A stretch of 64,000 bases of DNA from Guillardia theta CCMP2712 (Eukaryota; Protista; Cryptophyta), in NCBI RefSeq assembly GCF_000315625.1, contig NW_005434664.1:398345-462344 (forward strand), in the 5' to 3' direction. Of the stretch, positions 6,707 through 11,310 are shown piece by piece. Under the pieces are notes generated by a model. That model did no database searches, had not been told where the DNA came from, and saw nothing but the letters and a program-made list of their open reading frames with translations. How positions within the stretch are numbered: the stretch's first letter is position 1; the number at the start of each line of letters is the position of its first letter. A program made the position numbers and the translations under genes.

Positions 6707-8810
6707 ATGGCGGAGGGAGGAGGGGACGGGAGGGCAACAATGGGGGGCAGGATGCAGCAGGGTGGGAGACACAGCAGGAATGCGAGGCTTGTAGGAGCGG
6801 GGGCACTCGGGACGGTGGGGCTACTGGTGGTTGCGCTCCTTGTTGGAAGCGACATGGCTGCTCGAGAGCACATGGGGCGACCTGCCAGTGAACTTGAGCA
6901 GCGTGGGGACATGGAGAGAAGATGGAGAGGCATCGATGGTGGGAGAGAGAGTGCAAAGTTGCGTCTTGAAGCCCTTCAGAGGAGGCTGCAGAGAAGTGCT
7001 GAGGAGCTGCAAGGGTCTGACGGGAGCGACGACGATTTGATCAGCCACCTTATCGTGGGTCAAGGGAGCAAGGACCATGGGAGGAAGGACGCCAGCCGAC
7101 GGGTGCTGGATGAAAAATTCCGCCGTTGGATGGATGAAAGGAAGCAGAGGGAGGTCCATCAAATGCAGCAGCTGCAAACCGCTCCCATACCGAGCGATCA
7201 GCAAGGACTGCGAAATACGGAACCTGTCTATCATGCCCGCCCGGAAAGACTGAACACTGGCGCGAGGAGTGTACGATCGAAGAGAACAGACCGTCTTACA
7301 CCCTACCAGGCAAGAATGCTCTCGGACCTGTTCAAAGCATCATCAAGAGCTCCCAACACCTTCCCATCCACCACCTTTCTCAAAAGCTCTTCAACGACAA
7401 CGCTGAGATCAGGGCCGTACAAGGCACCTATGTCACAGCCTCATGCATGGGACGAGCCTGTCCGAGCCACCTCGCTGAAGGAAGTCAATGCATCGATCAT
7501 ATCTCGCACGCTGTTGGACTCGGATGCAGTGTTGAGACATGCGAGCAAGGATCTGTTAGCGCTCGAGGGCTTTCTGAGGAATCTTTCGCTCCGCGTTCAA
7601 CGAAGTGAAACGACGGCCAGCAGCGCGCGCAAGGGCGAGAAGCCGAGTGACTTGCAAGTCATTGAATCCGCAACAGCAGGAGCTGTGAAAGCTGTTCTTG
7701 CGATGCTGTTCTCTCATGAACAGATCTCTGAGGTCCATGACACCGAAATGGCATCGCCGCCAGTCAACGAAACAGAGGACGGTCTGAGTACGATCCCGCG
7801 ATCTTTGTCGTCGAGTGCTCAAAGTATTGGATCTTCTATCTTGAAGATCATGAATGTGTCGGTGCTCGGAAATCAGAGCAAAGTTGAGAAGGCAACGGGC
7901 AAGGCTGTTCTGCAGGAGCTCACTACAGCGTTTCGACACCATCAGGTTGTTCAGAGAAACAAGACGAAACTAGTCAGGATGCCGAAACAGTCCGTCAAGG
8001 TAAAACACCAGCGTGCAAAGCATGGTAGGTCTAAGATCGGAAGGATTCTTGAGAAAGTGACTCAGTGACAAGGTTGTGGTGAGCTGTGTCAACTACATTC
8101 GCTGATTGCCAACATACACTCAACTTTGAGTCACTTGAATATCAAACCTGCATCTCGTCACTCAATCAGAAAAGTTGCAAGGCGCAAGGCGACACGCGGA
8201 GGCTCCCCTGTAAATTTTTAACTTCCTTTTTATCTACCCCGTATCTGACTTCTTGTTGACGCAGCACAAGCCTGACAGCTCAACGTCTGACATTCCTGGC
8301 CTGAAATACGTCGAGAGAGATTACGTCCTCTCGCACATTAACGGGGAGCCGGTGCGTTGCTCCCTCCTCAGTTTCTTGTTCGTCTTACTCTCTTGACAGG
8401 TTATCGTCCCCGAGTTCATTCCTTCCCTTGCGAGCCGTTGGTCCCCCATGTCCCCCTCTCAGCAGCAACTTTCCTCAGACGGGATCGATGACGCGGGGGG
8501 CTGGAGGGCAGGTTCAGAGCTATCAACTATGGTGAGCCCACCAATAGCAGACCAGGAGTGGCAATTCTCCCAGGACGCCCACTCCGGTCGATCAGGTCAC
8601 TCCGAGCCCAAGGACATAAGGGAGACTGTCCTGAGGCGAGAGAACATGGGGACGCAAGCAGTTTCGTCTGCTTCCTCGTATGATGGCAGAAAGCGGCCGC
8701 AGCAACCTGGTTACTACGGGGCCACAGCGAGCATCTACGAGTCGATCGACAGGGTCGACAGGCTTTTGAAGGCATCAGAGGACGTCGCAGGTTTCGCCTC
8801 CTTGTCTTGA
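6707..8810 (+). CDS. Hypothetical type II membrane protein
   Basis: 453-aa ORF with an N-terminal hydrophobic helix (LVGAGALGTVGLLVVALLVG) and coiled region; further exons to the stop at 8810 are likely. Confidence 0.5.
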
Positions 8811-8935
8811 TAGAAGAGCCACCGAAATCTTCTGGTTCAGTCAGTGCTGCCCTCTCCGACTGTAAATAGGACGATGAGCGTGTATGTGAGCTCTGTGTAC
8901 AGGTTATCTATTAACAGCACAAGACTTGTCTCCTT

Positions 8936-10774
8936 CAAGCCGTGATCTTCAAGTTTCTCATACCCCCATGAGCGCATCTTCGTTCACAACTCGTCATCAT
9001 GCGCTTCGACTGAAAGTTCCTTGCTCACCTGTATCATCTCACCCCCTTCGCTGCCTCTGAGTTTAACTTGGCTCGCTCCGTAAACACCTGCGACAATAAG
9101 GGTCATACTGCCTTGCTCCTCGCCCTTTCCTCTAACCTCCGCAGCAGCCTTCAGCTTGTGATCTTCGCCTCCCCATGCCTTGAGAGCGGAGCTCTGCAGG
9201 TCACCATACATCAGCACTTGCAGGGAAGGGAGGTCAAGGCTGAACCTGCAACGCTCTCCCGAAGGAGAAGGTCAGCGCCCACGGTCTGCAGCTCCACTCA
9301 ATCACGAGTCGACGTCATCCTCACCTGCACAGGCTCACCTGTCCCGAGGGGCCTTCTTGACTATAGCATGAAGGTGATTGGTGGCCTCGTCTTCGGACTA
9401 TCATCATCATTGATGAGGACAGAAACATCATCAACTAGTCACTTGCCTGCCCCCCCGACAAGAAGCAGATGGTGGAAACAGCTAGAGCGAATGTGAGGCT
9501 GGCTTCTCAAGGACAAAAATATCTACCCGGCGGAACCACTCTCATCAGCGTCCGAACTTCAAAACCTTCGTCAACGGGCGATAACAACTCCTTGCCAGCT
9601 ACCTGTATACTCCGCCACATCCAGAGGAGCAAAGGGCTGGATAGACTCCGAACCAGGACGAACCTACCTCCCTCCATCAGACCCGATTGCCCACTGTCTC
9701 AACTCACCATGTTCGGCAGCAGAACTATAGCCTCGATGCACACGTGATTATCGATGAGCGCCTTGAACACCGCAGCCAGGACCTTCTCTGTGACCTTGGA
9801 GCACCGCTCGATCGAGTGCGAGCCATCTATGAGGATGTCCGGCTCGATCAGCGGCGTCAGACCCTTTGACTGACAGACAGCAGCGAATCGCGCCAGGCAC
9901 CATGCGTTGTCCTGTATCGCTAGGGCGCTCGGACACCCGTTCCTCTCGTCTATCCTCAGCACCGATCTCCACTTGGCAAACCTTGCTCCAAGTTTTTGGT
10001 ACGATGCACAGCGCTGGGCGAGGCCGTCCAGCCCCGTCGTCGAAGTCTCTCCGCAAGTCCCGGGGATTTCAACGACGCCCGTGTCAACCTTAATGCCGAC
10101 CTCGATGCCTCGCTGTTGCAGCAACTTCACAAAAGGCGTCCCGTCGTCGCATTGCTGGTACAGCGATTCTTCGAAGAGGATGACGCCCGAGATGTACTTT
10201 TCAATGTCTGGAGCCATGAGCAGCATCTGCCGGAATTTTCTTCTGTTCATGTCGTTGTTCTCTACCCCGTGGTGTGAGAACCTTTTGCCGATCGTCCCTA
10301 TGGACTCGTCGGCTGCAAGAATGCCTTTACCATTCGCCCCCAATGCACGTGCCGTCTCCTTCATCTGGTCGAGCATAGGAGGTGTCCATAGATACCTGCA
10401 GGAGTAGATCTCACAGTGAATCATCCAACAATGACGCTCGAGTATTCCCTAATTCCTCAACGTCAATGCATGCTCGATACAGGCTAACAGATCCAACCAC
10501 AAAGCCTCTCTCCCATCTTTAAAGCCACTTCAACCTCTAGGAACTTTCGTGACAATGCCATGTAGGTGTCAACAGGGTCATATGTGAGATACCAAGAGCA
10601 GGCTACCCGAGTCCATCTTTTCGGAGCTTACCTCAATTTCAGTGCCTGATCCCACTTCGGTATCTACATCATTCCCCCCTCCTCTCCCAGCCATCCTAAT
10701 CAACCTCATACTTTCGTATCCTTCAGTCATTCGTTGGTTTTCTTACCCTGCTTCCACAATACCCAGGGTCGCCA
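8936..10774 (-). CDS. Class I fructose-bisphosphate aldolase-like protein lacking the catalytic Lys
   Basis: GKGILAADES, GIKVD, GLDGL, FAKWRSVL, PLIEPDI, FLSGGQSEDEA and PWALTFSFGRALQ motifs across many exons; first exon (MATLGIVEAG) and last exon are tentative. Confidence 0.9.
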
Positions 10775-11310
10775 TCGCCAGCGTCGCTGCAACCGCTACT
10801 GCCGCCGCCCCCCGCATTCCGCCTTTTTCTTGACTACAGACCATCAATTTTGAGCACCATCACCCCCCATTTCCATCCATAATCATGCATAAACCCACCG
10901 GTACTTTCACTTTTTGGTACGAAGGTTTATAGTCAAGATAATGGAGTATGTCTCTACCACCCCACCCCATACTATCCATTCAAGTACCCCAGTCACCATC
11001 TTCATGTCCAGTACCCCAAGTACCCACCTGATCTAGAACCAAAAAGTCAGAGAAAACGACCGGTCATGAATCACTACCCGTCGACCCCAAAAATCACCCC
11101 TGTCTCGCTGGGGGTTTTACCCCAGCCAGCCACCCCTGCATTACTTTTACCACCCACCCTCTATCAGCCCTTTTACATTCACAGGATCCGACTACCCCCT
11201 TTGACACTACCCATTACCTTGAGGACTTCTACCCCAGTTTATGCTGGAATATTCAGCGGTCCTTTACTACCCCACCTTACTCATCAACGAGCACAGCTCA
11301 CCCCTACCCC

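Follow-up and report, generated by a model that had tools for sequence, protein, structure and literature searches.

Within the window, a stretch of 64,000 nucleotides of Guillardia theta CCMP2712 DNA (C10:398345-462344) that was the object of this analysis, a minus-strand gene at approximately 9034-10844 encodes a class I fructose-bisphosphate aldolase in which the Schiff-base lysine of the family is replaced by leucine. Its affiliation with the family is supported by a match to PF00274 in Pfam (E 5.8e-98) and by phmmer matches to aldolases in the PDB (E about 1e-115 to 4e-115). The gene is deposited as XP_005838781.1 / EKX51801.1, named "hypothetical protein" at NCBI and labelled fructose-bisphosphate aldolase in UniRef, and the protein read from its large exon falls into the same 90% cluster as this record. 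The database model (P0131, 334 residues) maps exactly to eight exons running from 10376 to 9037, with a TGA stop codon at 9036-9034, and the exon borders were derived by mapping this protein back onto the window. A putative first coding exon upstream brings the number of exons to nine. Homology searches were run with the exon sequences or with P0131, and the putative first exon was looked at separately. The features of the gene, in the direction of transcription, are as follows.

10747-10844, minus strand: putative first coding exon, start Met at 10844 or 10817, with a signal-peptide-like hydrophobic stretch and the donor GG|GTAAGA
10396-10746, minus strand: putative intron 0 (351 nucleotides), GTAAGA...CTGCAG, its final 144 nucleotides matching the metagenome contig L009 at 100% identity
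9708-10395, minus strand: large exon 1, covering rabbit-equivalent residues 10-232; exact match to P0131 residues 1-223
9837-9839, minus strand: Asp codon GAC at the position of Glu189, turning EPE into EPD
9711-9734, minus strand: remodelled strand beta6, I-E-A-I-V-L-L-P, against L-E-G-T-L-L-K-P in the family (homologue alignment)
9717-9719, minus strand: Leu codon CTG at the position of the Schiff-base Lys229 (HMMER alignment and codon reading)
9603-9663, minus strand: exon 2, exact match to P0131 residues 224-243
9527-9556, minus strand: exon 3 (P0131 mapping and intron ends)
9447-9481, minus strand: exon 4, with the FLSGGQ motif (S271/G272), by P0131 mapping and the adjoining GC-AG intron
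9398-9446, minus strand: intron after exon 4, GC-AG, donor GCAAGT
9339-9397, minus strand: exon 5 (P0131 mapping and intron ends)
9246-9285, minus strand: exon 6, with the FSFGRALQ motif (S300, R303) (P0131 mapping and intron ends)
9137-9193, minus strand: exon 7 (P0131 mapping and intron ends)
9034-9087, minus strand: last exon, ending ...AAKGVR before the TGA at 9036-9034

The nine exons are open throughout, the eight introns are properly bounded, and the window copy contains no frameshift, premature stop or broken splice site. The seven introns within the P0131 model measure 44-53 nucleotides, six of them being GT-AG and one GC-AG, and putative intron 0 is likewise GT-AG. An initial annotation of this DNA had stated that the splice sites and the remaining aldolase motifs are intact, and this is borne out by junctions that are GT-AG or, in one case, GC-AG and by the preservation of the pocket residues, most of which (D33, K41/R42, K107, K146/R148 and E187) are carried by exon 1 together with the changes E189D and K229L.

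Class I aldolases operate through an obligatory imine (Schiff base) at Lys229, in the numbering of rabbit muscle aldolase, and Tyr363 with the C-terminal tail assists proton exchange. At the corresponding place the minus strand, from 9746 to 9708, reads H V C I E A I V L L P N M, and a HMMER alignment to PDB chains sets Leu (P0131 residue 220, codon CTG at 9719-9717) opposite rabbit Lys229. This lysine is kept in 112 of the 113 full-length homologues of the first protein search, the lone exception, an apparent Leu, being a frame-scrambled sequence, and in all 55 relatives from Joint Genome Institute (JGI) metagenomes that reach the column. Where the codon was read as DNA, in two cryptophyte relatives (L067, L068) and two G. 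theta paralogues (L002, L005), it is AAG in all four, and at least two base changes are therefore required to arrive at CTG. The loss of Lys229 is neither a chance event nor a miscall.

The substitution does not stand by itself. Strand beta6 reads IEAIVLL in the window and LEGTLLK in the family, four substitutions besides K229L. The EPE motif has become EPD, with Glu187 kept and GAC at 9839-9837 in place of the Glu189 codon; all 113 close homologues and all 56 metagenome loci have Glu189, and Asp occurs there in 13 of 150 distant family representatives. A C-terminal tail of approximately 25 residues with its terminal Tyr is also missing, since the frame stops after AAKGVR where relatives run on to ...VKNYAY, and inspection of 8811-9036, up to the convergent neighbouring gene, revealed no tail-like exon of compatible splice phase. 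A weak LY..L.Y stretch in that interval was considered as a tail exon and ruled out, its splice phase being incompatible. Each of these points, namely the leucine at the Schiff-base position, the two changes that separate its codon from AAG and make a miscall unlikely, the altered EPE motif and the absent Tyr tail, had been made in the initial annotation and was confirmed. It had also proposed modelling the site for a compensating lysine; comparison of the lysines with those of the family found none near the catalytic face, and the lysines new to the family (residues 171, 280, 311 and 331) lie, by barrel position, away from it. Given the established enzymology, in which the Lys229 imine is obligatory and the Tyr tail assists, canonical turnover is excluded.

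The rest of the active site is preserved almost completely. Residue mapping found D33, K41, R42, K107, K146, R148, E187, S271, G272, S300 and R303 identical to those of rabbit aldolase, so that the acid/base and charge-relay residues Asp33, Lys146 and Glu187 and the phosphate-binding residues K41, R42, K107, S271, G272 and R303 are all present. The AlphaFold model is of high quality, with a predicted local distance difference test (pLDDT) of 96.7 and a predicted template modelling score (pTM) of 0.93, and it superimposes on rabbit, plant and apicomplexan aldolases with template modelling (TM) scores of 0.96-0.97 and a root mean square deviation of 1.1 A.

A maximum-likelihood tree computed with IQ-TREE places the window protein as sister to a group of cryptophyte proteins (P0001-P0004) with support of 99/95; the P0002 cluster includes Cryptomonas curvata (EP00291_P008971 / MMETSP1050). 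These are signal-peptide aldolases that share 60-63% identity with the window protein over the full length, together with a hydrophobic leader and, just before the barrel, an aromatic-x-Pro element (W/F-x-P) common to all four and to the window. Unlike the window protein, all four retain LEGT(M/C)LKPNM, EPE and the ...VKNYAY tail, and its terminal branch of 0.79 is several times the length of theirs. The matching leader in the window is predicted to be encoded by the putative first exon, whose hydrophobic core has a Kyte-Doolittle mean of approximately 2.0-2.2 over some 17 residues; with this exon, the nine-exon coding sequence comprises 1122 nucleotides in frame, the acceptor at 10396/10395 being phase-compatible. 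The database record XP_005838781.1 starts at Met 10376 and appears to lack the 5' signal-peptide exon, which is positionally homologous to the relatives' leaders. Because of the matching upstream exon and the sister placement, the gene seems to represent, in Guillardia, an aldolase of the secretory or plastid route that lost its nucleophile in this lineage.

A search of the G. theta genome (87.1 Mb, 669 contigs) for paralogues recovered three class I aldolase loci, namely the window gene and one each on C28 and C5, and two class II loci. The C28 locus is canonical, with LEGTLLKPNM and EPE. Given this canonical class I locus and the two class II loci elsewhere, the aldolase activity of the cell would be independent of the window gene. 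A long, uninterrupted CAG/CTG repeat lies near the canonical C28 locus (L002:~230-400) and translates, in one frame, to more than 60 consecutive Gln. The third class I gene, at C5:711267-712444 on the plus strand (L005/L006/L008), is highly divergent: it keeps Lys229, Lys146 and Arg148, and carries ACDEG for AADES, TIGDRF for TIGKRF (K41D), GVKPH for GIKVD, EPD for EPE and FSWSQVL for FSYGRALQ (R303Q). Residues of its phosphate site are thus changed, and its substrate or function may be altered.

Whether the gene is constrained or decaying was assessed from its pattern of divergence. P0131 keeps 95 of the 105 near-invariant columns of the alignment (at least 95% conserved). Of its 10 deviations, three sit in beta6 (G to A, L to V and K to L) and another is E189D. 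Agreement with the consensus amounts to 90% at the near-invariant columns and 24-33% at the variable ones (Fisher p 1e-14 against uniform divergence). The sole close relative found is L009, a 593-bp contig (k127_69943) of the ENA metagenome ERZ930064 that aligns to window positions 9951-10543 with 96% identity. Across the first 141 codons, the window and L009 differ by 19 synonymous and 5 non-synonymous changes, giving a synonymous divergence (dS) of 0.22 and a ratio of non-synonymous to synonymous divergence (dN/dS) of 0.07 (p 1e-8). The deviations M5, H36, L53 and S71, which are specific to the lineage and lie at conserved columns, are common to both sequences, and since L009 shares them, the fast-evolving phase predates the split between the window gene and L009. 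The initial annotation had suggested following both the lysine change and dN/dS through orthologues: the ratio could be obtained over these 141 codons, and no Leu229 orthologue emerged from a protein search with an 85-residue piece around the site. Among JGI metagenome contigs, 56 relative loci were found, none exceeding 65% identity and, among the 55 that reach the site, none without the lysine. A DNA search of the G. theta genome likewise returned no second copy resembling L009.

Taking these results together, we consider it probable that the gene encodes a maintained, non-catalytic derivative of class I aldolase, a pseudoenzyme that may act as a sugar-phosphate binder, sensor or scaffold in the compartment to which its signal peptide would lead. 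In operational terms it would be a pseudoenzyme, provided that it is expressed as a protein: the essential residue is gone and the fold is kept, and the gene is intact and under purifying selection. With Lys229 lost, no covalent enamine intermediate would form, and fructose bisphosphate (FBP) would be neither cleaved nor synthesized by the mechanism of the family. Sugar bisphosphates or triose phosphates would probably still be bound, non-covalently, as suggested by two phosphate sites that are still intact and by D33, K146 and E187, which remain in place. If the signal peptide works, the protein would act along the route through the lumen of the endoplasmic reticulum (ER) or of the plastid envelope, not in the cytosol, and it would bind ligands, sense them or serve as a scaffold there, with the aldolase reaction in the cell left to the canonical class I gene and the two class II loci. 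A role as a subunit of an active aldolase appears less likely, because the probable signal peptide is not seen in the canonical paralogue.

Several observations weigh against this reading, and most of them would fit a young unitary pseudogene, in which a signal-peptide aldolase became dispensable in Guillardia, lost its lysine and is now decaying, its frame and splice sites being as yet undamaged in CCMP2712. No terminal branch of the tree is longer than that of the window gene (0.79, the median being 0.17), and agreement at conserved columns is 90% as compared with 96-99% in the sisters (10 deviations against 1-4), which points to relaxed constraint. The C-terminal tail is gone, and aldolase activity is covered by other genes. 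In a search of 5.8 billion proteins, no transcript-derived protein at least 90% identical was found, a weak negative as G. theta's own records possibly lie outside its coverage. L009, the only related sequence, carries a TGG-to-TGA change that puts an in-frame stop at Trp147; it is also a mosaic, its first 200 nucleotides (144 of the putative intron and the start of the exon) being 100% identical to the window and the next 393 being 6% diverged, with 24 differences that are mostly synonymous. L009 may be a broken copy, an allele shaped by recombination or gene conversion, a paralogue missing from the assembly or an artefact of assembly; no Rfam match within 8700-11300 was found to explain the perfectly conserved intron stretch. 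L009 ends before residue 229, so that its dN/dS, spanning the first 141 codons, does not date selection to the time after the lysine was lost. To these must be added that ligand binding is deduced from the retained residues and the signal-peptide exon is a sequence prediction. Decay is countered by nine open exons and eight good introns, by divergence strongly concentrated in the variable columns, and by a dN/dS of 0.07 at a dS of 0.22, which is incompatible with neutrality for that interval in at least the N-terminal half of the gene. The deviations, moreover, are concentrated in the catalytic strand, with three of the 10 in beta6, every phosphate-site residue is intact, and the stop in L009 lies 18 nucleotides short of the point at which this small metagenome contig ends. 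On balance we regard the pseudogene as the less likely explanation, though one to be taken seriously. The initial annotation's view of a maintained, catalytically dead aldolase is accordingly upheld in part: canonical Schiff-base catalysis is impossible with Leu229, Asp189 and no tail, and the gene looks maintained, although the stop in L009 keeps a dying gene under consideration. The roles it proposed, as a sugar-phosphate sensor, scaffold or regulatory subunit, are conjectural.

The remaining explanations would change what the protein does or whether the leucine is real. An enzyme might still act on a sugar phosphate without Lys229, either through a substitute nucleophile, for which Lys146 on beta4 is the candidate, or through chemistry that involves no Schiff base; transaldolase has its Schiff-base lysine on beta4. 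The window protein keeps D33, K107, K146, R148, E187, S271 and R303, more than a scaffold would seem to need, and it is unusually complete in comparison with the other Lys229-less clusters described below, which have mostly lost E187 too. Against this, replacement of Lys229 in muscle aldolase is generally known to abolish activity despite the presence of Lys146, the missing Tyr tail and the change of the invariant Glu189 point to relaxed selection on catalysis, and no new lysine lies near the active site, so that we hold an active enzyme to be improbable. By analogy, it can be speculated that such a rewired enzyme would reside in the ER or plastid-envelope lumen, and that an imine at Lys146 would represent a natural migration of the nucleophile within the FBP-aldolase family, a proposal to which we give slight credence. 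That the real gene carries Lys, and that the leucine stems from faulty sequencing or assembly or from a mutation of the culture strain, is very unlikely indeed: a single genome assembly was examined, but the codon would need two base changes, four more substitutions occur in the same strand along with E189D and the missing tail, and the lineage-specific substitutions of the N-terminal half are reproduced in the independent metagenome contig.

The maintained pseudoenzyme, if real, is of some consequence. Class I aldolase is the textbook enzyme of covalent catalysis, and it has many moonlighting roles, among them binding to actin and V-ATPase, glucose sensing and bridging of adhesins to actin in apicomplexans, for whose study engineered Lys229 or Lys230 mutants are the usual tool. 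A natural, constrained aldolase devoid of this residue would be proof that a non-catalytic function of the protein has become fixed in evolution, and a model alga with a complex plastid, in which the protein is probably secretory or plastid-routed, would offer a clean system for finding that function. For practical purposes, the window protein should be left out of the aldolases in metabolic reconstructions of G. theta, in spite of its UniRef label.

It is also not the sole member of the family to lack Lys229. A search of 1.84 billion representative proteins found the lysine missing in 8 of the 150 best family representatives (P0152, P0190, P0194, P0232, P0240, P0258, P0268 and P0274, with Ala, Thr, Gln, Ala, Glu, Asn, Met and Arg listed as the residues), and within each of these eight clusters the change recurs from member to member. 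They include Pyropia yezoensis KAK1865126.1 (Gln), three species of Timema, among them CAD7569533.1 (Ala), a 13-member metagenomic cluster and several clusters known from transcriptomes alone. All eight lie outside the cryptophyte clade, and because their identity to the window protein is no higher than 40-48%, the losses of the lysine are likely to be independent, as judged by identity and not by a tree. The survey suggests that aldolase homologues without Lys229 have evolved more than once, with origins in cryptophytes, red algae, stick insects and lineages known from metagenomes, and that they may represent an overlooked class of pseudoenzymes. The phylogeny of class I and class II aldolases in these algae has been treated previously (Petersen et al., 2014; PMC3971594), with no mention of the window gene. 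Searches of the full-text literature found no paper on the window locus, its accessions, natural aldolase pseudoenzymes or the other Lys229-less clusters, and nothing relevant on the ENA project of L009. The G. theta protein is therefore a further case of a recurrent and seemingly undescribed kind.

Compared with established class I aldolases, such as rabbit aldolase A (1ADO/1ZAH) and Arabidopsis FBA6 (6RNG), the window protein has the same fold and pocket residues and 55-56% identity across the whole barrel, and it differs in Leu229, Asp189, the IEAIVLL version of beta6, the absence of the Tyr363 tail and a probable signal peptide. In terms of its sequence features it is an aldolase in fold and binding site, and it departs from the catalytic class I aldolases in Lys229, Glu189 and the Tyr tail. 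With the eight other Lys229-less clusters it shares membership of the class I family, a residue other than Lys at 229 and the usual lack of a terminal Tyr, and the beta6 strand of the metagenomic cluster P0190 (Thr229), LEALVLT, runs parallel to its own IEAIVLL. Most of those clusters, however, are also without E187 (Q or A instead) or without phosphate-site residues, both of which the window protein keeps. A further parallel is provided by engineered Lys229/Lys230 mutants of animal aldolase A, which are catalytically dead and have served to tell the catalytic role of the enzyme apart from moonlighting or sensing ones. The same residue has been removed and the fold retained in both instances, whereas the change in G. 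theta is natural and is accompanied by remodelling of the strand, by E189D and by loss of the tail, in a protein that is probably routed through the ER.

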